From Lytechinus pictus (Eukaryota), in contig NC_087245.1 of assembly GCF_037042905.1 (NCBI RefSeq), positions 19,902,001 to 19,966,000 of the forward strand: DNA of 64,000 nt. The letters run 5' to 3'. Both the position numbers and the translations under genes were made by a program. Numbering within the stretch: position 1 is the stretch's first letter; each line of letters begins with the position of its first letter. A model generated the notes under the pieces. The model saw nothing but the letters and a program-made list of their open reading frames with translations, was not told where the DNA came from and made no database searches. Of this stretch, positions 25,612 through 50,419 are shown piece by piece.

Positions 25612-25845
25612 GTAATAATAGGCATTTATATAGTGCTGTCTATCTCAAAATATTTAATGCAGAAAAAACAAGAAAAAGGGAGTTTGGATTAGTGTCTTAG
25701 TGCCAAGAACTGATACTGATAGAAAAGATAGACTTCAGTTTGGATTTGAAAGTCTCTTAATATGATTTGATTCTTAAATTTAATAGTAGATTATTCAAAA
25801 GAGAAGGTGCTGCGACAGAGAAAGCTCGCTTGCCATACTGGTAGG
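25612..25845 (-). mobile_element. L2/CR1-clade LINE 3' remnant (ORF2 C-terminus plus tail)
   Basis: Minus-strand translation QYGKRAFSVAAPSLLNNLLLNLRIKSY*ETFKSKLKS matches the L2 motif GxRAFSVAAPxLWNxLP...FKxxLKT; tail GCACTATATAAAATGCCTATTATTA. Confidence 0.85.
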
Positions 25846-27639
25846 CTATGACACCAAAAGGTAGAATACTTTTTTTTCTTTAGCTGTGATGGGGGTTTAA
25901 CGAAAAAAAAAATGATAATAGATTGTATATTGAAAAGTCCAATTATGACAGCATTGTAATGAGCATATTAAATATAATCAGGAATTACCATCTAATCACT
26001 AATGCTCATATTTTCAGACCAATTTCACTACTATGACCTGTATTATATCTTTATAGAATATACCGTATGTTAGAATATGATACTCCGCTTATTTGTCAAT
26101 CAAAAAAACTTCACTGTAGCCTGTGATGCAATAAAAAGCAGTTTTGCAATTTCCATATACAACGTATCCCTGCTTTGTTTCTAAACCTTGAAATATGATC
26201 CTCAAACACTGCAGAATAGCGAGGGGGCACTGTTTGCGCAGACAAAACTCACCACCGCGTCTTCCGTTACCGTTTGCAAGATGGGGGGAGAGAAACGGAT
26301 GCCCTCTTGAACAAACACCGCCGAGCCAGTGTTGTTCAAACTTGGTTAGCTAGGTTTGGACAGGGAGACCGAGACATTCATGTTCTTGGTTTGTATGGTC
26401 AAGGCAATAGAGGAGTCTGGCGATGGCTGGCGGACATGGCAAAACAAAAATGGAGGATTGGACGGGCGAGTCGAAGAAATGGAAGAGACTGACAAGATGG
26501 GGTGTACGGGAATAGTACTAGAAAGAGAAAGATTAGGGGTAAAAGAAACAGAGAAATAAAAGAGAGACAATTAAGTAGAGAGCAAGCATGCAAACGGGAA
26601 CATCCTTATACAGATTATGAGTAAGAGAAATGAAGTAAGCGAGGGGGTCTAGAGGGGAGATAAAAAAAGAGGAAAAAAAGAGATGGTGAGGAGGAGAGAA
26701 ATAGTGAATGTAACTGAGATTTAGTAGAGATGGATGGATTGAGAGCAGGTATACAAACCAAAAGCTCTTTCCTTTAAAGATTGTCAAAGATCCACCATGC
26801 ATAGCACCAAATACACTCGACTCAACTAATGTAACAACATTTCTAGCATACATCCAGTAAATAGCATTTCAGATCAAATGAAATCCCTAATGGTGTGTGG
26901 TAAGGTAGCAGGAATAGAGATAAAAAGCAGCTTTGAAGGAAAAGGGATATAGAGATAGAGAAGATAAAAAGTGACGTAGATGGAAAAGGGAAGAGATACC
27001 AGAAGAAGACTGAGATAGAGTTGCAAGAATGGGGACTAGAAGGGGGAAAGAAACATACCTAAGTCAACAGATCTAGGAACAAAGTCTAGATGACTTCAGA
27101 AAGGAACTTATTGGCTCGCTTGGCGTCATTGAGTTGACTGTCGGAGAGAAGCCCTCGGGGGACTTGAAGCGCATCTGCCCTAAAATGTTTTACTTGCATT
27201 GAAGAGGCGATTAATGGAGGGTAAAGACATGTATCTCATACAAGATCACTTGATACTCTTTGCGCTTATCTCCTTCCCTCGCATGTCCCATCAACTCGGG
27301 TCCAACTGGACACATCTTAGTTTCCTATTTCGTAGCCCAATGTTCCCAATTTCTTTCTCCTCTACCGCAAACTAGGAATCATCTTCAAGGTTACAAGGAG
27401 GCAAAGGCCCTTTTTCAAGATAGTTCCATTAACTCTCACAAACAACCATACATATTGCTTACGATGACAATCACTCCTCCCCACCGTTGAGACATTGAAA
27501 GTGCATATATCTCTAAAAATAATAAGTGCTCTAGAAAGAATTACACAAAAGTAGATGAAGCCAAATAACTCATTGTACCATTTTATTAAAAAAGTACCAG
27601 TTCATGTTTTGCTTATACTAGGTGAAAAATGTCCATTGT

Positions 27640-27872
27640 TTCATTGTATTTAGGTTTTTTAGGTGTTGTATGTTATAAGTTTCTTTGTTTTTTTTTTTGG
27701 TATAATTTGTATTTTGTTCTATTGGTGGCAGCGCCAATAAGGCTTCTCTGCCTTCTAAGCTGTCTCCTCGTTTCATAAATTATTTATATTTCTTGTATAT
27801 TCCAATATGTTTTGTAAATGTTATTTTTAATATATGAACGAAATAAATGCATATGAATGAATGAATGAATGA
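27640..27872 (+). mobile_element. CR1-type LINE 3' UTR/tail remnant
   Basis: T-rich UTR with a stem-loop (GGCAGC..AAGGC..GCCTT..GCTGTC), then AATAAA and a (TGAA)n tail. Confidence 0.5.
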
Positions 27873-30722
27873 GTGCATTATGAAGGTGTTTTTTTAACAT
27901 GCTCTGCAGATGATGGTCAATATGTGACCATATCAACAAGGCTTTTTCAATGATAGATAAGAAAACTTAATATAAATTAGGAGTGGACATTTGGGAGAAC
28001 AAACAGAAAAAAGTCATAGAAATGAAAAGTAGAGAAGTAGAGCCTGCAGATATGAAATGATGTTCATCCCTTCTGAAAAGCTGTCACTCCATCTACTTAA
28101 ACAACATTATTATCACAGCAGAGCAAAGAACCCATCAATTTACCCATTCTTCAAATGTCGTTCTCAATCAGAATAACAAATACATTGCATTTTGGTCCAT
28201 GTTCCTGTCTGCAAACAGTCTCATGTACCCACATCCTCACGGGGCGTGAGGGTATTTATAGATTGGCAAAAATGCAGTCATGTCACGGTGGTGGTGTAAG
28301 AATACCAACACAGACTCAAGGCCAGGTGCCATTAGGCCTCTACATGTGTGTCTCTCCATTTTCAAATCCAAACTCTTCAAGGTTTGCACATCTTAACTTC
28401 CTCTCTAGTGTGCACTTGAGGGGTCAAAGCCAATCAACATGAACAACAGTGGGGGAAGAAAGACGCGAAGGAGAGGTGCGAAAGCCCGAATTCTACCTTG
28501 TCATGATTGGCAAAATTGGTTGTTTCAAATTGTCTTCACATTATGTACTTAGGCATATGATTCAATTTCAAAGCCCTTCTGCCTCCAACAATGAAAAGTT
28601 AATCTTATAACATTTGATTGGTCATGGTGTTGTAGCACTTTTCCTGTTGAACATTCAAAATTATTGTACTTCTCTTGTTCACACTGCTGGAATGGCTAAA
28701 AATATGTATCTAATAATTCATATCATCTTTCGTTGATTTTGAGTTTCAATAAAATAGTACCTATAGCACTGAAAGGAGAGTGCTCTGCAAAATATGTCTG
28801 GATTTTCAGCTTACAAATGACCCGCACTTCATAACAGCCCTACTCCAAATTTGTACCCCATAATATACGTAAATAGGCATGAATAAATAAATATATGAAT
28901 AAATAAATAAAAACGGATGAAAATAAAAAAACTCATTATTAGCAACATTAATCTCAACCTCTCACAAAACTATGCAGCAACAGGATCGTACTGATTTTAA
29001 AAAGTCATAAGCTCCTAATCTTTGCAAAATCATCACTGACATAAATGTCAGGATCTACCGTACAGTCTCAAAATCCAATATTATCCATTGTCCTACGGCT
29101 ACACGATTGCCTTTTGCAAAATAGTGAAAAAGGAATGAATGAATGAATGAAATATGAGTAAAGTAAAGGGTAAGAGATATAAGGTGGTAGAACTGTCTAG
29201 GCCCCTATGCATATTCTCCTCTTCGATTCCCACTGTGAAGTTCATGTGGCGAGGCTATTCAGCTCGAAGCAAAGTGGAAAGCACATTATACCAAACATAT
29301 TCCCTCCTGGAAGAGTCAACGTATTCTCTGAGGCACGTGAATGACCTCAAGTAGAATGTCTCTTTTAAGACTCGGTTTGTAGTCAACTTCATTCTACATT
29401 TCTCTGATGTCTTCGTCCACAGAAACAAGATTATTCATAGAACTGCAGTCATTCTTGTAAGATTCTAAAGTGACGAATTGAGCGAATGCAAAGCAAACAG
29501 AATACAATACTGTTTTGCTTGGTCAAAAGTCTGCACATTTGCAGAAAATTCTAGCAAAACAATTTCCTTGAATAATACTATGAATTTGTCAACAAAAGTT
29601 GGGGTTTCCCCTGTTCTTGTAGTTGCTACTGTACTTCAAAGTATTATAAGGCATCAATAATCTTATATTTTCTATAATACTTTCAACATAAATGATAAAC
29701 TTAATACCTTGACAAAGAAAGGTTTAGAGTATAATTTCTCAAAATGAATCCCTCAATCATGTATGACATAATATCTCTTATCTTTGCATGAATGAAAAGA
29801 CATGCACTCTTATTTATTCATAGCAATATACATTCATTATATGATATTGGAGTACATAATATTACATTATCAATTCATATATATAATCACATTACATGTC
29901 CCTTGTCACAAAACCACCTGACTTTCTATATACTGTTTTATTACCCATCAACCTCTTCAATATATTACAATGAATAAAAAGGAAGAGTAATATTGATACT
30001 TGGAATTCATATTTCAATTCAATTTGTAACATAATCAAAAAGGGGGAAACTAGGAAGTCTTCACAAAAGAGTAAATTAGATTTTGTCAACTTTTCTTTCA
30101 ATCAGCACACGTCCACATCCCGCTTTATTCGGAAAAAGAGAAGGAGAACAAAAATATCTCACCCATTAGGAAAACATTTGTTTTGTGTGACTGGCTAGGT
30201 AGACATCCCCGAGTGCACCGTAAGTGGCACGTAGGGAAAGTGCCCCTAAATCCATACTAGACAGGAAAAGAAGTGGGGGAAAGATGCAGGTTTATTACAT
30301 GGCAGAATAACTTTAAAAGCTTAAAGGTGTAACGGCATAACGAAATTCAAGACGCGCATTAGTTCTGAATCGCCTTCACCTTGACATTGCTCAGAGTCAA
30401 GATTGAATATCTGTAGCACTGTTCACTGGGTGTTGTACATGGTAGAGGGAAAAAGGTTAGTTTCTGAAATTGGACAACAAATTGTTGTACATGTAATATA
30501 GCATCAATGGTAGCAACTAAGAGACAAAAGGAAAAGAAAAAAAGCAGGAGAGTCAATCTACAAAGAAGAGAAAAAGAATGATAAAAGTACTTGTAAAAGG
30601 GTGAGGAAAAACACAGGAAAGCAGTAGCTCGTAAGCATCATATCACATAGCATGACAGTATGTGATGCAAGTAGCACCAAACTCTGGAGTGGGGGCCCAC
30701 TTTTGCATGGATAAGCCGCTGT

Positions 30723-30760
30723 ATTGCCATAGCAACGTCATCCCAGAACCTGCCACGTGG
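30723..30760. promoter_or_regulatory. Candidate cis-regulatory motif cluster (RFX X-box, half-CRE, E-box)
   Basis: ATTGCCATAGCAAC (30723-30736), overlapping ACGTCA, and CCACGTGG within a CpG-retaining island. Confidence 0.4.
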
Positions 30761-32544
30761 ATCCCGGGGTAGGATAGCTGGCATCACCTGTCCCGCAACT
30801 GTATCAGATGTTGCTGATCAGGGAGAAGAACAAGATGCAGGCAAGGATGGATTTTAACCATCGTCACACAACCTACAACTAGAGAATCTCAACGATGCCC
30901 CCCCCCCCCTCTCTCACTACAGCTTCAAGTATATAACATTCTATGGGCAGAAATGCATTTAGAGCTATTTAAAATATTTATAAAATATGACCTACATGAT
31001 CCAACAAGCCATGAAAAACATGCTCCATAATTGTTAGATGAAATCCAGAAAAGTCATATCAAAAGTATATTATTACGAGGTTCAAAGATGCAAACATGTG
31101 TAAGTGACGGGAGTTGTCAAATGAAATTCTTTCTCATATAACGCAGTGTTATTATAAGGATAATAAACAATTCATAAATGACATTAGTTAGTGAGATATA
31201 TCCTGATACAAACCTTATTTATTATTATTTACTTGTTTGACTGATCAACATTATACCACAAACACAAGAATTTAACAATTTATCAATTAAAGATTGAACA
31301 AAGTGGCCTATACCATCTAAGAACAATACATCCAATTAAATAAATACTGATTCTTAAAAGCATGCTTTGAAGAGGCCTCTGTCCACTTCCATTTGTTTCT
31401 AACCAGAAAGCTACTTTCATTATCATGAATAGGCACTTTCACAAATTGAACTTAAAACTAAAATTAGCTATACACTAAATTACTATTTTCCCCATGTTGG
31501 AGCAATTTCTTTTGTTCCATTGAAGGATTTCATGACATTAACCTTATACAATAATGAGAGCATATATGGAATTACTGTGTTTTTCATGACTGCATGAAAT
31601 TAAAGAAACACCTTGAATCATCATGTACACATGCAAAGTCATTGTGTAATTCTAGTGTCGTGTAAAATTTTAAAGAAACATGGTCATTGTCGAGTGTATG
31701 ATACATGCTGTGTTAAAGAGCTATCTAACATCATCAACATTGTTCAGTAATCTCTTATGCCTATTCAACTTCCCCCTAACTTATTGTTCACCAGACCACA
31801 GCTATGCAAATAAAAGCTACAGGCTCAGATGGGAAACAAAATAAAAGGTTCGTGTTAAACTCTTTGACAAAAGTACAACATTAGGTCATCCATTGATAGA
31901 GAGGCCTGGATGACCCTGAAATTAGTTCCAATTAATAAATTAAGCCTAAATGTTATATGCTAATTTCTAATCAAGGTCAACATGCCGGTAGGAGGGCACA
32001 TTCATAATTCATTAGAATTGGTGGTAAGGTTTCCAAACATAATTGCATACACAATGTGCGTTTCTACTTGAATGATCACAATTTCTAATTTCCATATTAA
32101 TCCTTAATTTCGATATGCAAATGCTTAAACATATGTTATTTCATGAATGACTAATTTTGAAACATAAGGCTGAATAAATGGTGAAAGTAAAGCATTATTT
32201 ATCACAAATATATTATCAATAGAATTCATATTGTCCTGACGCAAAACTCTAAACGGAGCTCATGAATAATCGTCAATGAGAAATAATACAGAAAAAATGA
32301 TGTGGAAGCGGTTCATCGTGGCAATGGAAGAAGTTGGAGGAATTAATTGGTCGTCTTAACGATTGATCAAATGTTAGGATCAAATGTTTGATCCATCATG
32401 AGACAACCGATTAATTTCTTCAACTTCAATACAGAGAAACATTAAGAAAAAAAGAGAAATGGTGACCTGACCTTGATCAGAATATAAGTTATGAAGTCTT
32501 ACTCTACATCATGCTTTATCAGGCAATATTTCCTATATAGTTCA

Positions 32545-32694
32545 GGGGCCCCGTTATAAAACTCATTGTTATAACAACAGATTTGCAATCACAGTTAAAA
32601 GCTATTGATATCCATCAATTTCATTGGCTGATAGTAAAATTGTTATATAAATGTGGCATTTCTTATTATAACAAGTCTTTATGAAAACAAACCC
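32545..32694. mobile_element. ~150-bp foldback MITE, older copy of the 7895 family
   Basis: Shares ATTGGCTGATAGTAAA..TTGTTATA and TTATTATAACAAGTCTTTATGAAA with 7895-8041; GGG..CCC termini. Confidence 0.7.
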
Positions 32695-33751
32695 AGAAGA
32701 AGCAAGCCTAATGATACCTCAGAGCATAGCATAGATATTGATGAAGATAAATAACATTCACAATGAAAGCAATAATACCAAACAAAGTTATCATATTTCC
32801 TTTCGAATTTAACATTCACCATCCTACTCAAAAAGAGGGGTGGCAGAAGATTCTTTTCTTATTTGCATACTTCATAACACTTTGAGGTCAACTACTATAA
32901 ATGTTCATTCTTTTGAATACCATCCAAATCATTCTTAAGAGAAAAAAAAAGAACTTTAAAACCAGAAAACTTCTCTCTACAATGTTGACAAAGAGGCAGC
33001 ATTGTTTTACTAGTAATATATCCCCGGTCCTATTCAAAATCCTGTTCTCTCTTTTCTCGACACGCAACTGATATTTGATATTGTGACAACTATGGTATCT
33101 TTGAATTGCAAACCCTTACTGGAGTTTGATATAGTATATTAGATATCATTCAGGCAAATATATCACCTGACAATCCACTTAGAATTGTACAAATATTATA
33201 AGTGTACAAATATTACAATGATGGTTGAGGTTCTTGAAAGAAGTTTGTTTTAGCTTTTGTTCTGGTCTATAATGTCCTTCAACTAATTTTTTTATATAAA
33301 GATATCACCTTGAATGAAAAGGTTTGCCATAAAGAAAATTAAGAAAGTTATCTGGATATCGGGTGAGATGGCTGGCTGGGTGAAAAGAAGCAGAAAACGA
33401 TTTTATGAACAAAATAAAGCCTTGAATTTAGTCTTTGAGCGAAGATTGGGAGATTTCCTATGTATCCATGGCAGGTGTGTTAGGTATCAACTAAGAAAAG
33501 AAATATTAGACTGGATACATTGGGAATCAACAGTATTCTATGGGTTAAAAAGACAATATAATGATGAGGATGATCTGCTAATAATTATATGGATTGATGG
33601 ATCTGTATCAGAGTCATATTACTGTGAGGCACAAACTAGGAGGGGCTCTCATTTATAACAAAATGACTTTTGTAATTCAATAGTGAGACAAAAATATTGG
33701 ATAAAAATGGAAGATTACGAAAAACTTGATGACTGAAAATAGATCAAGCTG

Positions 33752-33922
33752 TACTCTAAATTTGAAGGATTTAAAATAAAAATGTCCTAAGATTCTGTGA
33801 ATAATGAGTGGCCAAAATCCTAAGAAATTAAAATAGAAATCCTTGAGATTAACAAAATATATTCAACTGGCCACTTTTTAGAGCCTCTCTGGATTAATGT
33901 CAAATCCTAGAAATTTAGAGTG
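33752..33922. mobile_element. MITE with CACT-type (EnSpm/CACTA-like) termini
   Basis: Left TACTCTAAATTTGAAGGATTT versus reverse complement of right end CACTCTAAATTTCTAGGATTT (18/21); internal AAATCCT repeats. Confidence 0.6.
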
Positions 33923-36900
33923 GGGGATTATTTATACGGTATTTTTTGTAAGTGTTAAAGGGACGATTGCAAACGTAAGCCCTTTCTGCTATTGCAGACA
34001 CAGTTACACAAGGACACAAAAATTGCAGATGGACATACAGTTTGTCTACTGATACTTTTGACAAAGTAAATATTGTCATGAACTAGTCATTGGCATGTCA
34101 TCTCAATTTAGACGTTAACCATAGAGGTGTTTGTTGGGTGAGCTATGACACAGCATGGATAGGTGTCAGGCCATCAGCTATCAGCTATTAGTCCACACTT
34201 TTGCGGACCTTTATTGCAGGGGTAGAGCAAGGTTAAGGTTATCATGAATCATTACTATGAAAACTACCGAAGGATAGGGGAAATGAATGAATAGTAAGAA
34301 CAGGGTAAATAAGAAAGATTGACTTATGGGAAACTTATACTTCTCTTCGACCTGGAGGGGACTCTAAATCAGCATAAGATATGAAAATAGAACATGTTTA
34401 ATCTCAACAATGAAGCATGTTCCTAATTATCAATATCACCATATTGTATATATGATTTCATTTTCAGATGGTTAATACAGGGATCACAAAAATTGGTAGC
34501 AAATCCACGCAACATAACTCTAATTCTAGACATGTTGTATTACAGATAATTACTTTATGAAATATTAGATATCTTAAAGCATGAAGAGGAATCACACTTC
34601 CTTTATCAAGGTTAGCATACAAGTTTACACGATAGGCTATATTAAAGTTTAAAAAATGGCCAACTGTTGACCTGCCTTCCTATCCTACCCAACCAACAAC
34701 CCCTCCCCCATCCCCCTGTCTGTACCCCTTTCTTTTCTGGAGAATTCTCGCATTGATCAAGATTGTAGATATTCAGCTGCGAATGGGCCGAGACAAGGAG
34801 GCGCCGCCAACAATTAGGTTGAATCCGTGATGGGGGGGGGGAGGGAGTTTGGCGATGGGACGAGGATTCAACCCCGGTGGAGAGCTAGGTCAACGCCCAG
34901 GTGGACAGGATGCGGGTGATGGGATTGGAAGAGATGGGATCCGTGTGCAGCAACATGAAGCCAGGTGTGAACGATACCACTGATCATTTCCATGGGATAA
35001 CAGCCAGGGGAAATGTTTAAACATGTTACCCAATCGATGGCTGCATCAACAACAACAATCTAGGACACCTATAACAGCAACATCCGCAAGCTAACCTTGG
35101 AGCATGCCCCTAATTGCCTATCCAACTCATTACAGCCAACTCTGTAGAGAAACGGTTTAAGGATAATCCTATTACCACAATCATCAGAGACACCTCATGA
35201 GACTGTTACTGCATGTATAGTCATCGCTTCTCTAAAAACCTGGGACACCCCAACAGGTGATTAACACTTGAGGACGTAGTATCACTTCAAAAATAACAGT
35301 TTAGACAATAATTAGCCCCAACCTTCAGAACAGGTGTCTAACCATGCCTGAGACGTCTTTCCTTGTTTGCCAGATATGTCTGGTTGATCTGAATCGACAA
35401 TTCAAGTTCAGAAAGAAGTGGGTTATATGAACTTCAGTCTCCATTTTACCTAATTTGGTATTTGACACGTCATTGGAGGGGTTAAGGCTATGTCCCACAT
35501 TCTCACATTATTAAGTGGCAAAGGTGTCTATCAAATTGTCCAATTTCTAAGGTATACTACATGAACATAACTTTCTAAAAAGATACTGGTTTTTACTATT
35601 GGAAGAAAGTGGTTCACAGACTTCATGACGACAAACGGTGTGTTGTAAACATGCAAGAAACCTTTAAAAAAACAAATGTATATCTGAATGCAAAAATTGG
35701 TAATGCAGGAAACTTTACTTTGCCAATTATGTTGGAGATACTGGCTACAAACTTATGAACATATTCTTAAATTCATATTTATTTCTGCTTATTAACAAGG
35801 GAATTGATAGGTCAACATCTTTGAAATCTAATGGTGGATTTCAAATCAATTCAAATTCAGTCTTAGGACAAATTATTTATTTGAAGAAAAGACTTGATCT
35901 TTCTCAGATGTGGAAATAAATAGATTAAATAAAATGTTATCTTTCTTCATGAACGTGCTGATATTTCAAATTGTATTGGCTGGCACTACTAAAGTCAGCA
36001 AGCTATTGTGTACCAATTTCTATTACATCTCCATCTCATAAGGGCACTATCCTCATCGCATTATAACATAAATAAGTTTACATCAATCATGCACTTTATA
36101 ATACATCTCAGCTCAGTAACTTATAAATAGCACCAACAAATGAATAGGAGATGGCCATGAAAATATTCTGAGGAATTAAAAATCATTACCTCTCCCATCT
36201 ATTGTAACATTCAGCCAGAAATTGCAATAACCAAAGAGGAAAGCTACCCCCCCCTCTTTTCAGAGTAATAACCCTTTTGAAATTCTATAGCTTTGCCATT
36301 TATCGATCTTCATAATCCATGGCAATCATATGCGGAGAGGATGAGCGCACGAATGCTCGCCTCGACGCCAGAACTAGAGATAGGTGACAAATCAACAAAA
36401 GAGGGCACTATCACGTTTCACACCGTGATAATCCAACTAACATTCTGGCCAAGTCCAAACTTGACAACCTTTGGCGATGCGTTGCAATATCATGTATTCT
36501 CTTCCTTGGCAGAGAAAGGCCGATGGTTTTGAAACCAACGTCCAATATATCACAGAGAGAGAAAGGGAGACGATCGATGTGTGTGCCAGAGGCTTTACAT
36601 ATCGCAAATCCTCATACAACCAGAATGGTGGACGGTGGCAAGAACGTCACAAGAAGTAATGTGCACCCGTCCATACAGCTTCCTTAGAATATACAACTCT
36701 TTAGTTTCACACTAATGAGTTTCAGAGTGCATTTCATAAGCAAGAGCTGTAAACATATGTAGTATGCATTGCCATGGCTCTCTACTATTATATACTTCTT
36801 TGCCTGCTCATGTCTTGCACAATGCTGCACCCATATACGTTTATTTTTGTCATAATTACACAATCTAACAACTTCTATTCATAATCAATTTTATAAACAG

Positions 36901-37167
36901 AAAATGGAATAGCAAAACAAAATGAAGTGATTCAAATTGAGGGCAGTAATCACCAAAAAGCAATTATTTTTGTGTTTTTACCTTGTTTTGAGATATAAAA
37001 GAAATATGTATGTTTTCTTATGAAGTTCAGGTACTGAAATTGTGTACTGAGAATACTGACCTTGTCCAAGTAATAAGAAATTACAACTAACTTTTCCCTA
37101 TAGATAGCCAAGTTCACCACCATTTCAGCTTTGTTGCTTATTCCTCTCCCAAACTAAAACAAAATGC

Positions 37168-37248
37168 AATGACGTTATGTCACTTGTTAAGAGGAAGTGA
37201 CGTGTTAGTGGAGATGCACTGTCAAATGACTCATTACCATGGAAACGG
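37168..37248. promoter_or_regulatory. Candidate enhancer with dense motif cluster
   Basis: TGACGTTA (CRE-like, 37170), GGAAGTGACGT (ETS-CRE composite, 37193), TGTCA (TALE), TGACTCA (AP-1, 37227), ATTACCATGGAAAC (X-box, 37233). Confidence 0.45.
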
Positions 37249-38300
37249 ATGATGATCAGGAGACAGTATGGGTGCACATTAAAAGACCGGTCTTTTGCAC
37301 CCATGATGGTAAGCACGACTGGAGCATTACTAAGCAAAATACTGTCTCCGCCGGGAATTATCAGGAAGAAAAATATTCATTGCAGCGTAAGAGGTTTTTT
37401 TTCATGAAAGAGGGGAATGGTCTCGAGTAAAGAAGATGGATGAATTGAAGATCAGACATTTTTTTGTTGGTAATATATCAGCAAATCTAAGATCAAAAGC
37501 AAATTTGAATACACATCACTTGTTCCGTGTTTTGTCGGGTTGGCATTAAGGTAGGAATTAAGGTAAAATCGTTCAACAAGAGTTCAAAGTTTGCTGTGAG
37601 AATGTTCAAAGAACTTTCACATAATCAATCCTATTCACATGCACAATCATAAACCGTTCTCTGACCACCAGTTACACCAGCGAGGAAACTAGGTCAGAAA
37701 ATGTCTACTCATAATCAAAATAAACTTTTATTTATTCATGTGTGAGGAGAAAGCACACTCAACAGATATCAATAAATAGCACCATTGCACCCAAATTATG
37801 TGAAAGAACTTAGAAGTTAATACTAATATCACAATGAAAACATGCTTAAATAGTTAAGGAATTTTTATGTTGTCTGATGAAACCTGATGGTCCCTGTACA
37901 AGGCATATGGGAATCAATGAATTAATCTTGTAACTTGTTGATTCAAACATTCAAAGTGTTTTCACTCTCAGTAATGACAGATCTCACCTTGGTGGTATAA
38001 AAAAAGTTATTTTTTTTTTCAAGATGACTTTGGCATAACATTAAATATAATGGAGTCATAACTAAACATATCTTACCTGATTATCCAAGGTAGATGTTGA
38101 AGAAGGGACATGAAAGATAAAAAAAAAAACAAGAGAAATCAATCAGATTGATTAAATAAAGCAAACTTATATACTTAAATACATTTAAAGAAATAGTATA
38201 TAAAAAATGAAACAAATCAAATTCATTATTACCCCCCCCCAAAAAAAATACTTTCATTCCTATGCTGTTTCTAGAAGACATATATATATATATAGAAAAG

Positions 38301-38455
38301 NNNNNNNNNNNNNNNNNNNNNNNNNNNNNNNNNNNNNNNNNNNNNNNNNNNNNNNNNNNNNNNNNNNNNNNNNNNNNNNNNNNNNNNNNNNNNNNNNNNN
38401 NNNNNNNNNNNNNNNNNNNNNNNNNNNNNNNNNNNNNNNNNNNNNNNNNNNNNNN
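38301..38455. other. Assembly gap (155 N)
   Basis: Run of N. Confidence 1.
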
Positions 38456-38728
38456 TACAGGGGGAGGGGAACCTCCAAATGAATATTCTCACAACTTTTG
38501 TCTTCATGACATGTGGAAGGAGAAAAATTGTTTTGTTTCTGTTTCCTTCACATCAATTTTAAAAATAATATTTCAAACCAAATCAGAATAACAATAAGCA
38601 ATTTTAAGAGAAATAATTTAGAACAGTTATCCACTTGTGAGGGAAAACACAAATTGTTGGTTCTATGTTGTTGGCAACAAAGAACAGATGAATGGAAGCG
38701 GAATGGAAAGTGGAATGGAGTGAACAGT

Positions 38729-39075
38729 GGAAGCATCGTGGTGTACCAGTTCTGACTCTCGCCTTGTAATCAGAGAGTCATGTGTTCGAATCCCACCATG
38801 GCCTAGCGTCCTTTGGCAAGACGTCAATCCACTATTTGCCACTCTCCACCCAGGTGTTAAATGAATACCCGGTAGGACGCGAAAGCCTATGTAGTATACC
38901 TAGCAATTGAATCTTGGAACCCTTGTTGGAATGCTACCCAGGGAGGGGAGAAGGTGCATACATTGTATGCGAGGTTGCCAGGATCCAATGACTGGGGTAA
39001 TAATATATCTTAAAGCGCTTAGAGACGTTGTTCCTATGTATTAAGCGCTATATAAATGTAGAATATTATTATTAT
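38729..39075 (+). mobile_element. Full-length tRNA-derived SINE with L2-type tail
   Basis: B-box GTTCGAATCC (38784), core CCTTTGGCAAGAC...CACTCTCCACCCAGGTGTTAAATGAATACC, tail AAGCGCTTAGAGAC...TAAGCGCTATATAAAT..(TAT)n. Confidence 0.9.
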
Positions 39076-40712
39076 CATTAATGGGCAAGAAAGAGGGCTT
39101 TTATTGCAGAAACGAAAAAAGAGAAATGTACTTGGCTTTAAGCAAGTTCTTTTTTAGCCTTCATGAATTTGATGAAATGACAATATCTGCCATCATCTTA
39201 AAACATCATGCATCCCTAAAAAACACTCTCCTCACTGAAGTCCTCCTGAAAGACTAGACGAGGAGAAACAGAAAAGTTCTTGAGAACGAAAAGCACGGGA
39301 ATAAGCCCCTGCAATCAAGGACATAGGGCGTATCGGATAACATTATCTGAAGTAAAAATCCATTAGTCTTGAAATGCTAGAAACGTTGAAAATTGCAAGA
39401 TGAACGGGATAAAAAATGGCCAGCCTCCTTCATCAACCTAGTTTTCCACCCGTTAAGAAAGTCATCTGAACATCAACAAATCATAAAGAAAAAGGATGTT
39501 CAGAATAATGTGCTGCGAAAGAATAATCTTTTGTTAGGAGACCAAAGCCTGGATGCTTCAGCTAGTCTATACCACAGCAAAGTTAATTTGTTCAATAGAT
39601 TCAAAGAAAAATAACACATAATACCAAAGACTTTTTCAAATCATAATAACATTGATCACGGGAGCAACTTAGAATATGGCTGACATAAAATTTGCTCCTT
39701 CGCTCCCTTCTTAATATCTCAGAGGGCATTGGGTTTGAATTAAGATTGTAATAGAATTTATGTATCAGAATAATGTACAGATAAAGATTACGGTTAGTTC
39801 AGCCATGGAGGTAAAGTTTTATGTTTGGCTTAATGTGCAGATTTTCCATTGGAGCAATTGTCGCTAGAGCAAACGTCATGGAACCAAAACAGTTTGCCTT
39901 CTTTGGCACTAGGAATTAACCCATTGCCTACTGGAACCAGTGGTCCCATGTACAAAAAACCTATGATTACTACAGAATTCAGAGTTCAATGGGTATGACA
40001 CTTTGCTAATTTCTTTTCTGATCTTGGCTACTAACTGCAGAAAGGCAAAGATGCAATCGTTAACTTTTGTGAGTCATTTTATCTATTATATCATGTTCTG
40101 CTAAACCAAGAGAGACTGGATATTTGATATAATGTATTTGTTCAAGTTTACTGCAGCAAATAATAAATTTTTCGAAGTCTGCACATATTCAAAAAATTGA
40201 TTCTTAAATTATTAAGTTGCCCTATCATCAACTAGAACTGGAACTCTATTACAAAGCCTATGGGAATTACAGAATAGAACGGGTTAAGTTTCTCACAAAG
40301 TTTCTCTCTAACAGTGGTCTTCTTTACATCAAACACACAGATTACACAAAATGTAGGAATTAAGCAATCACAACAATTTATTGATCCATTTATATAAAGA
40401 GTGATGTCAGGAGTAAGCTAGGATGGGTAGACGGTCTTAAGGAAGCAGCGATTACGGTGTTTGTATGTTTACCTAGGGTCGAGCACTCCTTCCGTAGATC
40501 CGTCCCAACGCTTCCGATCCAACGATAAGCAATCTTTGCCTCTCGTGGACAAACGTTTATTGCCAGAATTTATCGTTTGCGTCAGCAGCAGCGGCAAACA
40601 GGGGAAGGCGGTTTTTTTTCTCTGACCACACTTTCTGTTTACTCATTTTGTCAACTACACATGCCATGGGAGACAGCGGTGGTGAGAGAAAGAGTTTCAT
40701 TAAAGGATATGT

Positions 40713-40886
40713 GGCCTGTTTTCAGAAAACTTGTTGTCAATGACAAAATGCAAGGAATCTGTGACAAAACATTGACAAATGCAAGGAATCTGTGACAAAT
40801 TTGATCTTGACCAATCAAAATGCAGGATTTGGGTTGCTTAAAATGGCTGTATATTGTCATTAATGCTAAAGTTTCATGAACAGGAC
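40713..40886. mobile_element. Decayed MITE with internal 32-bp tandem duplication
   Basis: Imperfect TIRs GGCCTGTTTTCAGAAA / TTTCATGAACAGGAC; AAATGCAAGGAATCTGTGACAAA occurs twice; central CCAATCA. Confidence 0.5.
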
Positions 40887-41740
40887 TTGATCTTAATTCA
40901 ATTCTCAATAAACACACACACAGAGACAAAAACAAAACCAGCTATAAATCTACTTTTGATAGAACAGGTATATATTTTATGTGTTTTATTTACTAATAAT
41001 GTTATGGATGATGGTGATAGCATTTTAGAACACTCACGATTTCAAAGAAACTCAGGAAAAATATAAAAGATTTTACCACAATTTTATACCAAAAATTGAC
41101 AGAAGGAACAATAAAAAGGGTATTTACACAAAAATGGTTATGTAGCACTCAAGAACACGAATATCAAATTATGTAAGAGTATATGCTAAAGAAATACCAT
41201 TTGAGAAGAGTGGCGTCAGATTTGTGACCATGTTAACAAAAAAATAGGAAATAAATCATGAAGCTAAACAATCCTGGATTTAGTGAAGTAATAACAGTTG
41301 AAAGTCATGTACTGATAACATGTAATGTGATTCTTATTTCTGAATTATGGTTTTATTCCTAACAAATTGGATGGTATATATCCTCAAGGGAAACTAGATG
41401 TATGACAATCAGCAAGGGAATCTAGTTTTTGAAGGAAATTGGAACTTTTTTTTATCAAATTCAGCAGCCGATTTGCCATGTCCAATCTGGAGGGTTTCAT
41501 TTGCCTTTCATTCTGCTCTTCCATCAATACAGCTGAAATTGCAGTTTGCGCATTACTGTATATTGATTAGGTGATTTATTTGGTTACAGACAAATAATTC
41601 TTTTCATATGAGACCTATCTTGTAAGAGCATAATCTCAAACAGATGGACTTTCAGTTGTACTTTCAGTTTGTAACTATTGCAATCCATTGGTTTCTGAAA
41701 TGAAAATATGATTTTATTCAAGTTTTTAGTAATACATGTA

Positions 41741-42070
41741 CAGCATAGGAAATACATGAGCGTGACGGGTGATTTCGCCCTCATGACAGCCCAAATCATC
41801 CCTAAAATTCCCCCAAAATGCATGCTTTGGGGTGACTATTCTTTCTCAAATCACCCACAAGATCTGTACTAAACAATATTCAAGATTATTTAGAAAATTA
41901 ATGTTCTAAATGTGGCAGAAGAATAATATTTGATTTCAATGGACAATTACTTTTTTACCCCTGAAAAGTAGCCCTTCAATTGAAAGAAATAGCCCCCAAA
42001 TTCAGCAATTGCCCCAATGTGGAAAAGAGAAGTAGCCCCTAAAAAATAACAAAAAATGTTTCCTACCCTG
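41741..42070. mobile_element. hAT-like non-autonomous element, 330 bp, 8-bp TSD TACATGTA
   Basis: CAG...CTG termini; TIR CAGCATAGGAAA versus CAGGGTAGGAAA (10/12); TACATGTA directly on both sides (41733-41740, 42071-42078); internal (A/T)GCCC repeats. Confidence 0.8.
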
Positions 42071-42183
42071 TACATGTAGACTGATTTAATAGCAGTTGAT
42101 TATGATTATTAGGAAGATTATATACAACTTATAAGCCATCTCTATAGTAAAGCAAAATCAGACTGTTTGTTTCTGTTTTATTA

Positions 42184-42659
42184 GGTGGTTTCAGACCGCC
42201 TCGAAGTTCGCCAGTTCCAGGTATTCTCTGATCGGGAAATTTACCCCGATCAGAAAATACCAGGTATTTTGGCGGTGTGAAAGCAAACTACGCGTAATAT
42301 CCCCGAAAGAAAATACCCGATAAATAGTAGCTACTTGGCGAAATTACGAGAACTTTCGCGGGGATTTTTCCAAGGTCGTGGGTATTTTGGCGGTCTGAAA
42401 GCAAATTACGGGAACTTTTAGCCCAGCGTGTCGTTGGGTGCGGCGCCGTGCATGGGTTGCTGCTGGGCTAGTGATTTTGAATTTTGCGCCTTGCTGCTTA
42501 TCAGACCATACTGCGCATGCTCGTAACTTCAGGAACTTATCCCGAAGGGTATGTTTCAGGGCGGTGTGAATGCAGGAATAATTAATGGGTATTTTTCAGC
42601 CTAAAAAAGTTCTCGTAATTTAACGGGGATTCTTGTGATCGAGGCGGTTTGAAACCACC
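42184..42659 (-). mobile_element. 476-bp MITE, copy 2 (inverted relative to 5435-5910)
   Basis: Reverse complement of copy 1 with about 8 substitutions counted by eye; TA on both flanks. Confidence 0.93.
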
Positions 42660-44965
42660 TACTTCCACAGTTGGAGTTCAAGTGAATTTCAATAATTCGT
42701 CACCATTTTCACTTATACCATCCCAAGAGGATATCAAAGGAATTATAACAAACACATGTTTAAAGGTTTTTTTTGGGTTGAAACAATGTGATCTAATTGC
42801 ATCTTAAGTGAATTCATTGATTAAGAGTACAATATTTAAGGAATCAAGAGACACTTTCCACATTTATGAGATTATGATGCATGGATAGCTTAAATAAACA
42901 AATAAAATAACAAAATATTATCAGTTTCAATTCATTTATCAGATTTTGTCTTTTTGTGATACTTTGTGAAATGGTGACAAATTGATGCAAGAGAGCTTTC
43001 AAAATGTGTCACAGCTTAAGATTGAGTGATTACACTGTAACAATTTGAACTATTTAATCTGAACACAAACTAGATTTCACTCAACTCCTTATCTCAACAT
43101 GTTGCTAAAATAGCACCAAATCAAATGCAGGAAACCCATAGATATGCAATTTGTCACATGTCACATGTTCAGAAATAGTGGAAAATTGCATTCCTAACAC
43201 TTTCTCACTTTTAGCCAAAGTAACTTACAATAAATGGAAACTCTCTTTGGAATAAAATGAACATTCCCTTTTACCCTTCTACTTCTGACATGGTGTTTCA
43301 TTAGGTAGTCATACCCTTACGTTTTGGCTGTATTAGTGTTTAAAATGCCATTTACTAATATCAGGGAGACAACTTTCTAATCATTCTAAATCTGAAGGAA
43401 ATTCTCTTCCCCTAAGGAAGCTATCTTACTCCAAGAAAGGTTTGGTATCCAGGGATCTTTTAAAAGTAATTTTGCTCATTTGCATCTTCATGTGAAAAAG
43501 GGGAATTACTTCAAACTTTTGTAAAATTCTAGCGTAATTTCAATCTACAAGTACGTTTCTTTGCTTAAATATGGCTTATAAAGACAAGATTTTTTTTTTA
43601 ATAATTCATCACCTGACATGTTTCTCTCATCAGATGAATCTATTCAAAAACTCTATTCATCAAGCATTGGAGTCACTTTGAAACATTTTTTAACATTTCC
43701 TTAATGGCATATGCATACACCATCATTTCATGAAAACTATAACATAAAAAAAAAATGATTGTGGCCATGGCATTTATTCACATATCTGCTCTTTAAAAAA
43801 AAAGTCATATATGATCTCACCAGAGCAAAAGTTTTACTTTTGTTATACTTTTGTTATCTTCTTGATTATCATTTTTAAAAGAATTTATTTTTTAGGGTAA
43901 CTCCTACATCCATTTCATGAATGAAAGTTTAACTTGATTCAATAACCCTATTCAGATGAGAAATGGATAACTACAGAACACGACAGCTTTACATTATATA
44001 CTGTATGTTCTTGTTTACCTTTATTAATTCAATTCCTAATACTAGATTATTTGGGTTTTTTTCAAGAGAAAGACAGTGGGTGGCATTTCTATCCTTCCTG
44101 GTGCTATGAGAGTCATGTTTGTGAGAGGAAATTGGGATACTCTTGTCACTGGAGATGGGAGAAGGAAGCAAACTCTGATCATATTTCATCATTATATTCA
44201 AGATGATTTTGGAGTAGGTGCTTTGGTAAATGGCGAGTGGAGAGCTACCCATCTTTCCAATATTATAGGAAGTGATCATTTGATGGGCATGACGCAGGTG
44301 ATAAAATACATTTCTTTTTGTCTTAAAGAAAATAAAAGTAGGAAAATGTCAAAGTAAATACAATGATCAGTGGTTTCCTGACGGAAAGCCTTAATCTCTC
44401 TTTTTATGAAAATCTAAAGCTCGATTTCACAAAACGTAATGTCAGTATTAAATAAATTCATATTTTCTGCTCATGTTTAGTCTGTACGTGCATCACACTA
44501 GACACAGACAGAGATGATATATGTCATTTGAAAATATGTAGGCCTATCTCTTTTTTTATCAAGATACAATTATTACTACATGATCAGTACCTAACATTGT
44601 AATTACACAATTCTGTACAAAATCATTAAGTGAAATTAACGATCAAATAGATCCTTGGGAGTAGATAAAAATAGGATTTTACCATGAACTTCTTAAATTC
44701 AATTCTTTCATTACAAGGATATGTCTGGTATTTAAAGAAAAGGGATTTCCAAGTGAAGGATTTAAAAGACTGAATGCAGTAAGAAGATAATCAATAGAAA
44801 ACTAGGCTTGGTGCAATAACTAAAAGATTCAATTTTGAGAAGAAAGCAAGTGTATAAATAATTTCTATATTGATCCAAATTAACCTTGCCAACATACATA
44901 ATCGGAGCAAACTTGTTGCCTCGATGGAATTTCAAACTGCAATGGCTTTACACATGCACACGTCA

Positions 44966-45046
44966 CTATAGAGCCGGGGTAATAGTATGCAGCGCTTAGA
45001 AACATTTGTATTAAGCGCTATATAAATGTTGCATATTATTATTATA
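44966..45046 (+). mobile_element. 5'-truncated SINE/L2 tail
   Basis: GCCGGGGTAATA..GCGCTTAGAAAC..TAAGCGCTATATAAATG..(TAT)n, matching the tail of 38729-39075. Confidence 0.75.
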
Positions 45047-45275
45047 ATGCGAGTTCCCGGCTGTGATTAATTCACATGATATCCAACTAGTGATCACATG
45101 CACATTCTGAATCGATTTAAACTATTTACATAGCTTAGCACCTGACTTATTCTTCAATAAAGCTAACACTTGTCTCTCTCAAAATTTTACTGATCACTAA
45201 AATGATCATTACCTTATGACGTTTGGGGAAAAAATATGTTAAACTCCCTTTAGAAAATATACAGCCCTATTAAAG

Positions 45276-46285
45276 CATAGAGCTATTACAGAGGAGGACC
45301 GACTCTCTCGAACGCTTTGCACCATGCGTGGCACCGCTAATCCCCTCACAGCAGGTTGGTCCATCACGGCACTTTCACACTTACAGGCGCAGGCCGCCCG
45401 TAAATCAGCCCTAAATCAGATAGGGAAAGTTGACCGAATGCAATTTAAAACGCCGTCATTCGGACCAAATGGGTAATATCAATATAAATAAAATTTACAG
45501 ATCATAATGAACAAAATATCATAAAAGTTAGGTCTAGATCTATCTCTTCGAATGCGTCAGTTCAAATATTTTTCAGAAAAGGTCCGGAGCCGAGGCCTGT
45601 ACTGTGTGAATGAGCTGAGCTCGGAGCTCCTGCATCACACTCACCTTCAACTTACACAAATAGGAGTACGTACGTGGGGCACTGGAGGATACTCAACGAT
45701 GCATCAATCAACGTAGAAATGCCCTGTAGATTCGTCGTTATATTTTCAAGGCAAACATGACCAAACAAATAATCTTACCATCGAAATCAAGTTTAAAGTA
45801 TGCTTTTCCCCTCATTGTAATTTTTAAGACAGGGGCGCACAGGAAAAGGTTTAAATAAAGCAAGAAAAAGATACATACATAAATGACTAATATCCAACTT
45901 TCTTCGTACGTACCGTGGCTGGGTTGAATCAGATTGTAACGTATTTGGTATGTATGCAAAGGGGATCATCTCAGAAGTTCAACTATACATCGAAGACATA
46001 CATCAGGAATCTGTACGAAGCGATATGGATGTTGGAAGTACAGCAAGACGTGTTTTGATTTTGAAAAAAATCAGAGCTCAAAGGGAAGTTATGTGGAAGA
46101 ACGTCATTTACTCGCATGGACCTCAAATTTTACGAGCGGGCTTATCGCGTTACGTAAGCAGGCTCTTACTTTCGCCTGGCGGCTCGCCGATTGATTTTAG
46201 ATATCATTCCTTCGCCAGAGGGAAGCCATAACAAAGGATTAACAGAGGAATTGAAGGAAGGATCTCCTTCTGTAATAGCTCTATG
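45276..46285. mobile_element. Non-autonomous P-superfamily-like element, 1010 bp, 7-bp TSD
   Basis: TIRs CATAGAGCTATTACAGA(A)GGAG / CTCCTTCTGTAATAGCTCTATG; perfect TSD ATTAAAG at 45269-45275 and 46286-46292; CAT termini with 7-8 bp TSDs are typical of P/Galileo elements; no transposase ORF. Confidence 0.85.
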
Positions 46286-46408
46286 ATTAAAGTGCAATTT
46301 TCCCCTAATTTAACTAAAGAAAACGTTTTTCTGAATATTGTTCTATTTTAACAGAATTCACGTAAGATTATTCAAGAGATGAATTTTTCTGCAATAAAAA
46401 TTACCACT

Positions 46409-47622
46409 AAACAAGTGGAATGCCTCTGGCAGTCTCGCCTGCATTACGCAATTCGATATAGCAGCAGTGCATGCTGCCATTGAAAACAGCTAATGAATAA
46501 TTATTCACAGAAGAAATCACTAATATGATAATAAAATATGTCCACTGACCCAAAATGACCTCTGACCATAATCATGTGACCCAAGACATGTGAAAAACAA
46601 TCATACATGCTTGATTACCCTTATGTCGATGTTTCATGAGTTATAATCCATACACTTTTAAGTTATGATGCCAATTCAACACATACTCCCAACACGGCCA
46701 GATTTCATTGACCTTCAAATGACCTTTGATCTTGGCCATGTTCCTGAAATGCGCACAGGGTATTCAGGGATACATTGCTGCTCTTATGTCCAAGTTTCAT
46801 GAACTACATGTAGATCCATAAACTTTTAAATTTACATGTATGATGACAATTCCTCAAATACCCCAACATGGCCAAAGTTTGTTGACCCTAAGTGACCTTT
46901 GACCTTGGTCATGTGACCTGAAACTTGCACGTGATATACAAGAATACGTGGTTCCTCTTATGTCCAAGTTTCATGAACTAGATCCATAATCTTTTAAAGT
47001 TATGATGACAATTCCTCAAATACCCCAACATGGCCAAAGTTTGTTGACCCTAAGTGACCTTTGACCTTGGTCATGTGACCTGAAACTTGCACGTGATATA
47101 CAGGAATACATTGTTGCTCTTATGTCCAAGTTTCATGAACTAGATCCATAATCTTTTAAAGTTATGATGACAATTCCTCAAATAACCCCAACATGGCCAA
47201 AGTTCATTGACCGTAAGTGACCTTTGACCTTAATCATGTGACCTGAAACTCAGGCAGGATCTTCAGTGATACACTATTACCCTTATGTCTAAGTTTTATG
47301 AACTAGGTCCATATAAGTTATCATGACATTTCAAAAACTTATCCTTGGTTAAGATTTTGATATTGAGTCCCCCAACATGGTTTAAGTTCTTTGACCCTAA
47401 AAGACCTTGACCTTAGTCATGTGGCCTGAAACTCAGGTAGGATGTTCAGCCATACTTGATTACCTTTATGTCCAAGTTTAATGAACTAGGTCTAAATTCT
47501 TTCTAAGTTATAATGACATTTCAAAAACTTAACCTTGGTTAAGATTCAATGTTGACGACGCCGCCGCCGCCGACGGAAAAGCGGCGCCTAAGTCTCGCTC
47601 TGCTATGCAGGCGAGACAAAAA
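46409..47622 (+). mobile_element. Pearl/Tsp-like Helentron-associated element (HINE) with internal tandem array
   Basis: Starts AAACAAG; subterminal inverted repeat GTCTCGCCTGCAT (46432) / ATGCAGGCGAGAC (47605-47617); 3' hairpin; GAC/GCC microsatellite at ~47554; about 6 units of 162-184 bp with TGACCTTTGACCT and TATGTCCAAGTTTCATGAACTA. Confidence 0.85.
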
Positions 47623-50273
47623 AAATAGTCAATAAATATGGCTATCGTCTTGCAATGTTAAAAAAATATATATTTTGAAAACATTGAAACATTGTAAATG
47701 TGCACCTGATTCATCATATTCATCTCTATCGTGTAAAAAAAAATAATAAGAAAGTTTTTCAAATATATGTTAATTATAAATTCAATTTCTTGAAAGGATT
47801 CAAAGAAATAATAAATGGGGTCGTTTCAAATAAAAATTTACATTATCTAGAACCGATGATAGGGAAAGTAGTGCACTAGACTTGCACATCTAGGAAGATA
47901 ATCTAACCGGAGATTCAGGGAATTTATTTCAAAGTCATTAAGTACTTTCCTTCTAATGCCATATTCGTATCGAGATAAGAGAGTAAATACATGCACGAGT
48001 AAATCTGTTTGAGTGAAAACGATTATCTCTTTTCTCTAGCATAACATTAATATTATAAATCTAGACTGATACATCTTCAGGGTGAGCAAAATCTCAGTAG
48101 AGATAGACAAAAATAAAAAAATATACAAAAATAAAAATGTTTTCAGTATAATATTGCAAACTCACAAAATCATTAAAGAAGAAAAAAGTAAGAACTAAAT
48201 TCCCTAATTTCGAAGGCTAAATCCACATACCTTTTCTTTACTTGATGCTTGCTGTAGGAAACAGATTTCGCTTAAGTGTGTAAGATATTTTTAAATTTTT
48301 GATAATCTACAAATACTTGACCTAATATTTAGTTTATTATTGATCATATCAACCTTAATTCAGATAGTTAAAAAAATTATGTTAATCATTACTAGATTTA
48401 TGAATTTACATCTATCTTTTATCAAAATATCTCAGCCTCAAATTATTTAGCCATGTGACTTATGAAATGTTCAAAATCACAGCAATTTACAACATTCAAT
48501 TGAGGAAAAACATGTCAACAAATAGACATAAATTTTGTACCGAGAAACAATTCAGTTTGATTCTTTTAAACCCTTAAAATGTTTCAGATATATTTTCTCC
48601 TTACTAAATTCTAATATAGTCCTCTCTTCAGTCAGTACATGTAAAATTATTATGAAGGTTGTATGTACAGGTTTGTTGTGCTGGAGGTATACGCTTTGCT
48701 GTCATCATCATCATCATTAAAAAGGCAATATCTGATGAAATACATTTGATGGTCAGAGGGGGGTGGAGGGGGAGGGCCTGAAGCTCGGGGGGGGGGGGGG
48801 GTACGGTAAAGATGATATAAAAAGAAGGATTTTGAACACACATTGTAATAAGAATGATCTAATGAACATGTCTCTCTGCCCCAAGGCCAAGTAATTTCCG
48901 AAGGAGCAAATCATCAAACCGAAACTTTCCCATGAAAAAAAAAGACTGCTTTGCTGCGATGAAATAAGCCATGAGAATTCCTCCCCCCCCAAAAAAAAAA
49001 AAAAAAAAATAGTGAATATGAAGTGACCACAATTACCCTCAACACCAGCATCCAGAAGAGTAAGTAATATAAAGCTAACATCATTCTTGCTATCAGCATT
49101 TTCAAGGTATGTCTCATATGCATAAAGCCATATGAGATTCTAAATATGCTTTATAAATGTATCAAGATAAAAACTTATTTTTCAAATGCATGGAATGCCA
49201 AAAATAAGCAAGTTCATTATCCATATCAGGCTGAGTTGCAACTATTTGCTACAATGCAATAAATGATATTAAGAGGGAAAAAAAATGCTTTTTTACAACT
49301 TCTCAATATCTTTTTTTAACTGTCTGGGTTTTCAAAATTTGGAGTCTTTAATGTTTTTTTTTTCTTGGTGCTATACCGGTTATTTGTAAAGTTGACAGCT
49401 CACACAAAGTGGGAACAGACATTTTCTAATTATTTAAACAAAGTTTGACTACATCTTTTATGATTTTATTTTATGTAAAATTGTGACAAATAACACACTT
49501 TGCACTAAAATGAATATTTTGAATAAGACTGTAAGCAGAATTAAGCTAACCTGATGGGGAAATTTTTTTGGCTTGCCATACTCCAATCTCAAGAAGAGTC
49601 ATATATTTCATAACAGCTTTATATGAAACACTCCAGCCTAAGTATATAATCTGTGTCCCCAACAAGACAATTGTACATGCAGTACATAAACTTTTCACCC
49701 CTTTTCCTCCACTGGAGTCCTGTGTCTTGTGTAAATTAAAGTTAAGAGGCCATGGCAGAGTGAATGGCTCAAACCCACAGAAAATTAAAGTATTTGGTAT
49801 TCTGTTGGCATTCGATGAGCGCATTGATTGGTGTACCTCATCATCCTATTCCTATTCAGGTTTATATATATATATACATGTATACACATGTATATAAGGA
49901 TAGGACAAGGACGCTAAGAACATTTCAGAGAGAGGCAGTTTAAGGAGAATGAAAATGGCGAAACATTATCAATCAATAAAAAGAAAGCCTGAGTGTTTGG
50001 ACTATTTAGTTTGAGGTGATGTTAACAAATCTACTACAGAACCAAATTTGAAAGAGGGTTTGAAAAGGCAGATTGAGTACTTAAACTTAACACAATTTAA
50101 AGGAATTTAGAGAATACTGGCTATTAATTTGCCAGACAAACCACAGCTGTGAAATAATTATATGGTGTGAACTAGTGATTTTGGGAGTTAAAAAATGAAA
50201 AATTTGAACACAATAAGAAGAAACCCCTCTATAGACATAGACATAATTTTGACTTTTGATTCTTCATGCATGT

Positions 50274-50419
50274 GGGTGTGTCATAAAGCTGTTTGTAAGT
50301 TAAGAGCAACTTTAAGACTGACTGGTAACCTTTCTTTTGTTCAATGGTCATTGGCGATGGTTTAGCAGTCGTTCTTAAAGTCGCTCTTAACTCACGAACA
50401 GCTTTATGAAATAGCCCCC
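50274..50419. mobile_element. Foldback MITE
   Basis: ~44-bp inverted arms TCATAAAGCTGTTTGTAAGTTAAGAGCAACTTTAAGA / TCTTAAAGTCGCTCTTAACTCACGAACAGCTTTATGA; GGG..CCC termini. Confidence 0.8.

Follow-up and report, generated by a model that had tools for sequence, protein, structure and literature searches.

To our knowledge, recursive splicing has been demonstrated experimentally only in flies and vertebrates. The vertebrate RS-exons reportedly described by Sibley et al. in 2015 involve exon-definition recursion, a regenerated 5' splice site and a premature stop on inclusion, and the reading proposed here for a long intron of the sea urchin Lytechinus pictus would share all three features. Distant branch points located behind long AG-free zones were reportedly associated with alternative exons by Gooding et al. 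in 2006.

In Drosophila, the recursive sites of Ubx, kuz, Bx and luna (Duff et al., 10.1101/006163; Joseph et al., PMC8605326) consist of an abutting acceptor and donor on the sense strand of a very long intron. Their pyrimidine tract adjoins the AG, and TT occupies positions -5/-6 in 196 of 197 ratchet points (bioRxiv 10.1101/006163). The cryptic RS-exons of flies are short (around 50 nt) and usually out of frame, and they are closed by a competing downstream donor (PMC8605326); the segments removed in each step measure 2.6-63.6 kb (bioRxiv 10.1101/006163). For kuz and Bx, disabling the recursive donor was shown to bring the cryptic exon into the message, with loss of the mRNA (PMC8605326). 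Proof of use in flies came from junction reads, from saw-tooth read density, and from lariats and conservation; the L. pictus candidate is described here from its sequence. In vertebrates, exon-definition recursion with a regenerated 5' splice site and a stop on inclusion was also covered by Blazquez et al. (PMC6224609), who count about 10 known human intronic recursive sites, a small number, found mostly in long neuronal genes.

In sea-urchin introns longer than 50 kb, ratchet-point motifs occur at 0.54 per 100 kb on the sense strand versus 0.066 on the antisense strand, an 8.2-fold difference (Shepard et al., 2009, PMC2773006, Table 2). Motifs were defined in that study by a score of at least 80% of the human consensus matrix, and no loci were named (PMC2773006). 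As far as motif statistics go, the ratchet-point idea has therefore been available for sea urchins since 2009. The author of a preliminary description of the DNA analysed here knew of no characterisation of recursive splicing in echinoderms; this stands for experimental work, as no experimental demonstration in echinoderms was found in the literature, but not for the motif excess, which had been published in 2009 (PMC2773006).

This article describes a locus that gives the 2009 statistic a concrete test case. The urchin is genetically tractable, the intron measures 219 kb, and candidate junctions can be named in it (A2 208583 to 38076, 62305 and others). The main product is a locus model in which the intron contains about six named candidate junctions. 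The central reading, for which a probability of roughly 0.4 is estimated, is that the site at 38077 plausibly acts as a ratchet point, followed by a cryptic RS-exon of 89 nt, during removal of the 219-kb A-type intron.

Host gene and predicted A-type intron

Coordinates refer to the window, meaning the whole stretch of 64,000 nt that was analysed; exons of the host gene located beyond its ends are given on the same scale. Identification of the host gene had been proposed in the preliminary description as a check, and homology searches assign the site to the L. pictus Rev-erb/E75-like NR1 nuclear receptor gene, LOC129259031. A search with the large hinge exon retrieved L. variegatus LOC121425969 at 99% identity, with L. 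pictus LOC129259031 in the same cluster, and a profile-free search with exon F2 returned echinoderm orthologues, the crinoid one being named NR1D1-like. The contigs from Logan that contain the gene are short genomic fragments of another urchin, located round the large hinge exon.

The gene is encoded on the minus strand. The zinc-finger exons F1 (-10912..-11000) and F2 (-22279..-22428) are found below the window. Far upstream, exons A1 (227373..227167) and A2 (208657..208583) were located by tblastn and by searches of the species' own genome with the A-type proteins of D. setosum and S. purpuratus. It is at these exons that the A-type isoform (S. purpuratus isoform X1, D. setosum) begins, and the L. 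pictus A1/A2 protein is 95-96% identical to the S. purpuratus isoform X1 model. The first coding exon of the B-type isoform (-6560..-6622) is also found below the window, and only the A-type pre-mRNA would traverse the site.

Exon A2 ends at the boundary AAAG|GTAAAT and F1 starts at cattacag|AT, and the two exons join in frame. With the boundaries set by homology, the A2-to-F1 intron would extend over 219,494 nt, from 208582 down to -10911, and the entire window (1..64000) would be internal to it. Counted from its 5' end, the 38077 site comes 170.5 kb into this intron, on the sense strand, with 49 kb left to the 3' end, in agreement with the earlier guess that the host was a long intron. Both the intron and the A-type transcript are inferred from conserved exons and homology, since the L. 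pictus RefSeq model lacks the A-type exons. The RefSeq protein of LOC129259031 (837 aa) begins past the DNA-binding domain, and both zinc-finger exons, the B-type exon and A1/A2 are all intact in the genome (-6622 to -45504; 208583 to 227373); the annotation thus seems to be missing the 5' part of the gene.

The N-terminus of the D. antillarum protein, MLVARMKSYLPA, was absent when searched for in L. pictus, where the B-type exon takes its place. Between D. antillarum and L. pictus, the locus can be aligned in exons only. Introns of the gene are 86-93% identical between L. variegatus and L. pictus, over a part of the L. variegatus locus that reaches window position +1643; the L. variegatus intron is on CM031015.1, upstream of about 84.83 Mb. 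In S. purpuratus the gene, LOC100890792, has a range of 131 kb. An open frame of 720 codons, suspected to be derived from a transposon, occurs on the minus strand of the same intron at 109581-111740, outside the window.

Structure of the candidate site

Read on the minus strand, the site is C38079 A38078 G38077 | G38076 T A A G A38071, that is, CAG|GTAAGA at 38071..38079 with the junction at 38077/38076, in the context ...TTGGATAATCAG|GTAAGATA. Of its 9 positions, 8 agree with the consensus. The hexamer GTAAGA starting at 38076 is identical to that of the F1-exon donor of the host gene (CAAG|GTAAGA), and joining exon A2 to G38076 would yield AAAG|GTAAGA. An AG-free zone of 87 nt (38079..38165) precedes the acceptor AG, the closest AG upstream being 38167-38166; ranked against the AG gaps inside 3 kb, this zone has p=0.023. 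Downstream there is a second donor, AAG|GTGAGA at 37982..37990 (junction 37988/37987; A37990 A G37988 | G37987 T G A G A37982), which would set the 3' end of the candidate cryptic RS-exon, the interval of 89 nt between the two junctions (37988..38076). The preliminary description had placed the junction, the 87-nt zone and the second donor 89 nt downstream at exactly these minus-strand positions, and the octamer TATATAAG (38173-38166) and the ATG (38111-38109) were also found where it had put them. Its statement that recursive sites are built from a 3' splice site directly abutting a 5' splice site, with a cryptic donor further on, agrees with the published recursive-splicing exons (PMC8605326).

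A search of the 811-Mb genome relaxed to E<=10 gave a single copy of the 241 nt round the site (37960-38200), and scans for Rfam families, tRNAs and tandem repeats gave no match. An origin of the region from a repeat was considered and rejected: the stretch is single-copy and unrelated to the look-alike site at 7571. Exact and homology look-ups with a 66-aa open reading frame that abuts 38077 returned no match. A run of 155 N (38301-38455) begins 224 nt upstream of the site, the reading of which is unaffected; another run, of 164 N, occurs at 51363-51526.

The donor half of the site is close to consensus and the acceptor half is atypical. The polypyrimidine tract (minus strand, 38099..38138) contains 36 pyrimidines in 40 nt, including a run of 11 T, and it stops 21 nt short of the AG, so that it is distal (22-61 nt upstream) instead of adjoining. 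Matches to yUnAy suggest candidate branch points within 38139..38152, namely TTAAT (A38152), CTGAT (A38143) and TTGAT (A38139), which precede the AG by 75, 66 and 62 nt. Next to the AG, pyrimidines occupy 5 of the 10 positions from -14 to -5, and positions -5/-6 are AA. The fly-type arrangement, with a pyrimidine tract directly upstream of the AG and TT at -5/-6, is thus not that of 38077; this rule may not apply to echinoderms. The real acceptors of the host gene include ones with tight tracts and, at the other end of the range, one whose tract is interrupted in a similar way.

As judged from its layout, the 38077 acceptor is of the kind in which a distant branch point is paired with the first AG past the tract. 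Gooding et al. are said to have described such acceptors, with a strong U-tract set well upstream, a long stretch free of AG and use of the first AG that follows; unlike 38077, these belong to annotated human alternative exons and are not zero-length or recursive sites. If use of 38077 were confirmed, it would mean that the pyrimidine tract of a functional ratchet point may lie at some distance from the AG, and the motif employed to search other genomes would be widened accordingly.

The 219-kb intron was also scanned by a classical test that asks for YAG|GTRAGT and for 7 or more pyrimidines in the 10 proximal positions. It is passed by three sense sites (165286, 128137 and 62306) and no antisense site, and it is failed by 38077, which is therefore not the best candidate of its own intron. 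By a simple proxy for the score, 38077 is also probably below the cut-off of Shepard et al. (PMC2773006). The site does combine the core motif of a ratchet point with location in a long intron, on the sense strand, and with a cryptic exon that is short, out of frame and bounded by a second donor that would compete with the first. In this it is like the Drosophila sites, as it is in its abutting acceptor and donor; it differs from them in the position of the tract, in AA at -5/-6 and in the length of the cryptic exon, 89 nt compared with around 50 nt.

Proposed splicing steps and transcript evidence

If 38077 is a ratchet point, the 89-nt exon would be defined about 170 kb into the intron by the distant-branch-point acceptor (a branch point near 38139-38152, the 40-nt U-rich tract and the first downstream AG, 38078-38077) together with the donor at 37988/37987. 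Exon A2, which ends in AAAG, would then be spliced to G38076, regenerating the 5' splice site AAAG|GTAAGA. In a third step the regenerated donor would outcompete the downstream donor, and the 89 nt would consequently be removed with the next intron segment. That segment would run to one of the ratchet candidates at 22558 or 7571, or to the F1 acceptor at -10911/-10912. Were the downstream donor to win instead, the product would be an mRNA with a frameshift and an early stop: with the 89 nt inserted between A2 and F1, 30 codons are open and MN-stop follows, the TGA being the third codon of F1, as in a poison exon.

This last outcome raises the alternative that 38076-37988 is a rarely included cassette or poison exon of the A-type transcript, regulating the gene via frameshift and decay and involving no re-splicing. 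The spacing of 89 nt between acceptor and donor and the early TGA on inclusion would suit such an exon, as would the reported tie between alternative exons and long AG-free zones with distant branch points (attributed to Gooding et al. in 2006). It is nevertheless considered improbable: the 89 nt received no read in any of the three runs described below, and the exon would start with a near-consensus donor, a situation in which the competition model favours skipping by re-splicing (PMC8605326).

Three L. pictus RNA-seq runs (X1-X3; library selection not stated), sampled at 12.9 M records each, or about one quarter of each run, were mapped on 35200-41100 at 90% likeness. Depth was zero over 37958-38154 in all three, with no joint or loose end at 38076 or 37987, and nearly all other bins of the 5.9 kb were equally empty. 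Over 38155-38351, where there is (TA)n simple sequence, depth was about 0.2-0.5 in two of the three runs, and no read starts were seen. The zero depth counts against expression of this stretch as an exon or first exon in the three samples. Because the surrounding intron is uncovered too, the lack of reads bears on the expressed-exon readings only and not on recursion.

The same data bear on an internal alternative first exon, an option raised in the preliminary description, by which TATATAAG would drive a transcript whose first exon ends at the 38077 donor. The TATA-like octamer is located 55-62 nt upstream of the ATG, a strong donor follows, and the gene does have alternative first exons (the B-type exon and others in S. 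purpuratus and Diadema models). Set against this are the RNA-seq depth over 37958-38154 and 38155-38351 and the coding consequences: joining the ATG...CAG frame to F1 gives MSLLQHLPWIIR and then a stop, and use of the second donor puts the same stop within the 89 nt. In addition, TATA-like octamers are frequent at 33% GC, and the annotated isoform N-termini of four urchin species include none inside the window. The first-exon proposal, left unsupported by the three samples and by a stop with either donor, is regarded as very improbable.

The only pile-ups in the mapped region, at 38549-39139 and 39731-39927, consist of hundreds of reads that are 90-95% alike and come from a high-copy repeat. 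High-copy short repeats are located at 38727-39083 and 39731-39927, and a first look at the genome gave at least 3,769 candidates for the former at about 91% identity. Joints such as 39940->37891 correspond to fragments of the repeat family that are arranged differently here. In the X4 contigs, of unstated type, word depth was 20-37 over 37958-38351, a stretch containing simple sequence.

Chance, enrichment and further candidates in the intron

A single site of this kind can be a coincidence, and the most direct rival to the ratchet-point reading is that 38077 is a chance motif: a good donor beside an AG that follows a T-rich run in an AT-rich, single-copy intron, ignored by the spliceosome. 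Under this explanation the T-rich run could derive from an old poly(A) tail, seen here from the other strand, and an unused 38077 would be an ordinary chance motif of an AT-rich intron. The frequency of AG|GTRAG in the window fits composition, with 12 on both strands versus 11-15 in Markov resamplings and hence no over-representation, and an AG-free zone of at least 87 nt precedes 1.6% of the minus-strand AGs of the window. The interrupted acceptor, with its weak proximal pyrimidine tract and no TT at -5/-6, and the zero reads at 38077 are also what chance would give, and the site had been chosen in the preliminary description for these very features. On the other hand, AG|GTRAG preceded by a zone of at least 87 nt is expected 0.04-0.09 times per window by Markov resampling and was seen twice, both times on the minus strand. 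One such site per window is uncommon and still possible by chance. The strong donor pair at 89 nt is likewise scarce, close AG|GTRAG donor pairs being expected about 0.21 times in the whole intron and seen twice. Taken together, chance is a serious explanation of 38077, nearly as probable as the ratchet-point reading.

The intron-wide pattern is harder to produce by chance than a single site. Markov resampling yields too few long AG-free zones, and this comparison was made against the empirical distribution of AG gaps instead. In the long intron, a zone of 50 nt or more free of AG precedes 8 of the 22 sense-strand AG|GTRAG sites, compared with 6.1% of all sense AGs (binomial P=3e-5). Ordinary AG|GT showed no excess, with 48 such zones among all 722 sense AG|GT sites, and sense AG|GTRAG differs from the other sense AG|GT with an odds ratio (OR) of 9.4 (P=3e-5). 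The controls comprised the antisense strand of the intron (3/17) and 141 kb of flanking L. pictus DNA and the D. antillarum locus, both strands (0/32), the flanking L. pictus part being short introns, exons and upstream DNA. Against all controls (3/49), the sense count of 8/22 gives an OR of 8.8 (P=0.0025), and the difference persists with the two sites picked in the preliminary description removed (6/20 versus 3/49, P=0.014), which counts against chance. This OR is similar in size to the 8.2-fold excess of Shepard et al. (2009, PMC2773006), which concerns the same clade and the same kind of signal, and it is a different quantity.

The strand comparison is less sharp. Sense versus antisense only, 8/22 versus 3/17 is not significant (P=0.29), and there is a mild excess of long-zone sites on the antisense strand also; of the three antisense sites, one has a downstream donor, a point in favour of chance. 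By local rank among AG gaps inside 3 kb, 7 of 22 sense and 3 of 17 antisense sites have p<=0.05. A GTRAG donor 20-120 nt downstream accompanies 4 of the 8 long-zone sense sites (128137, 38077, 22558 and 7571), compared with a background of 12% (P=0.01), and the combination of long zone and downstream donor occurs four times on the sense strand and once on the antisense strand, with about 0.16 expected by chance. The enrichment statistics rest on one locus, and the zone and donor thresholds were set after the site was seen.

The intron has other candidates besides 38077. The minus-strand site TAG|GTGAGT at 62298..62308 (junction 62306/62305), with a zone of 115 nt, is a better classical fit, and no GTRAG donor occurs inside the 400 nt downstream of it. 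It belongs with two further sense YAG|GTGAGT sites, 165286 and 128137, both outside the window; the AG-free zones of the three are 80-115 nt, and 128137 has a second donor 34 nt downstream. Closer to F1, also on the minus strand, are AAG|GTGAGG at 22550..22560 (junction 22558/22557; zone 52 nt, next donor 66 nt downstream) and AAG|GTAAGA at 7563..7573 (junction 7571/7570; zone 58 nt, next donor 26 nt downstream). The candidates divide the intron into segments of 15-66 kb. Several candidates per intron, tens of kb apart, in a long 5' intron of a developmental regulator are also what is found in Drosophila.

A broader proposal would be that the 219-kb intron is removed stepwise via about six sense ratchet points (165286, 128137, 62306, 38077, 22558 and 7571), some of them with distant-branch-point acceptors unlike the fly type. 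This stepwise model is tentative and, on present estimates, rather doubtful. If true, recursive splicing would for the first time have been demonstrated beyond insects and vertebrates, a result pointing to a mechanism that early bilaterians already had.

Some of the AG|GTRAG sites are repeat-borne, as a repeat family carrying ...CTCAACCCAG|GTGAGGTG has four copies, at 15093 and 17239 (plus strand) and, outside the window, at -4443 (plus) and -16089 (minus); the AG-free zones there are about 30 nt each. Finally, an inverted repeat of 482 nt, 98% complementary, has its arms at 5431-5912 and 42182-42663, 36.3 kb apart. It flanks the sites 38077, 22558 and 7571, and a stem formed by it in the pre-mRNA could loop out 36 kb; the arms probably derive from a single transposon, of which two young copies face in opposite directions.
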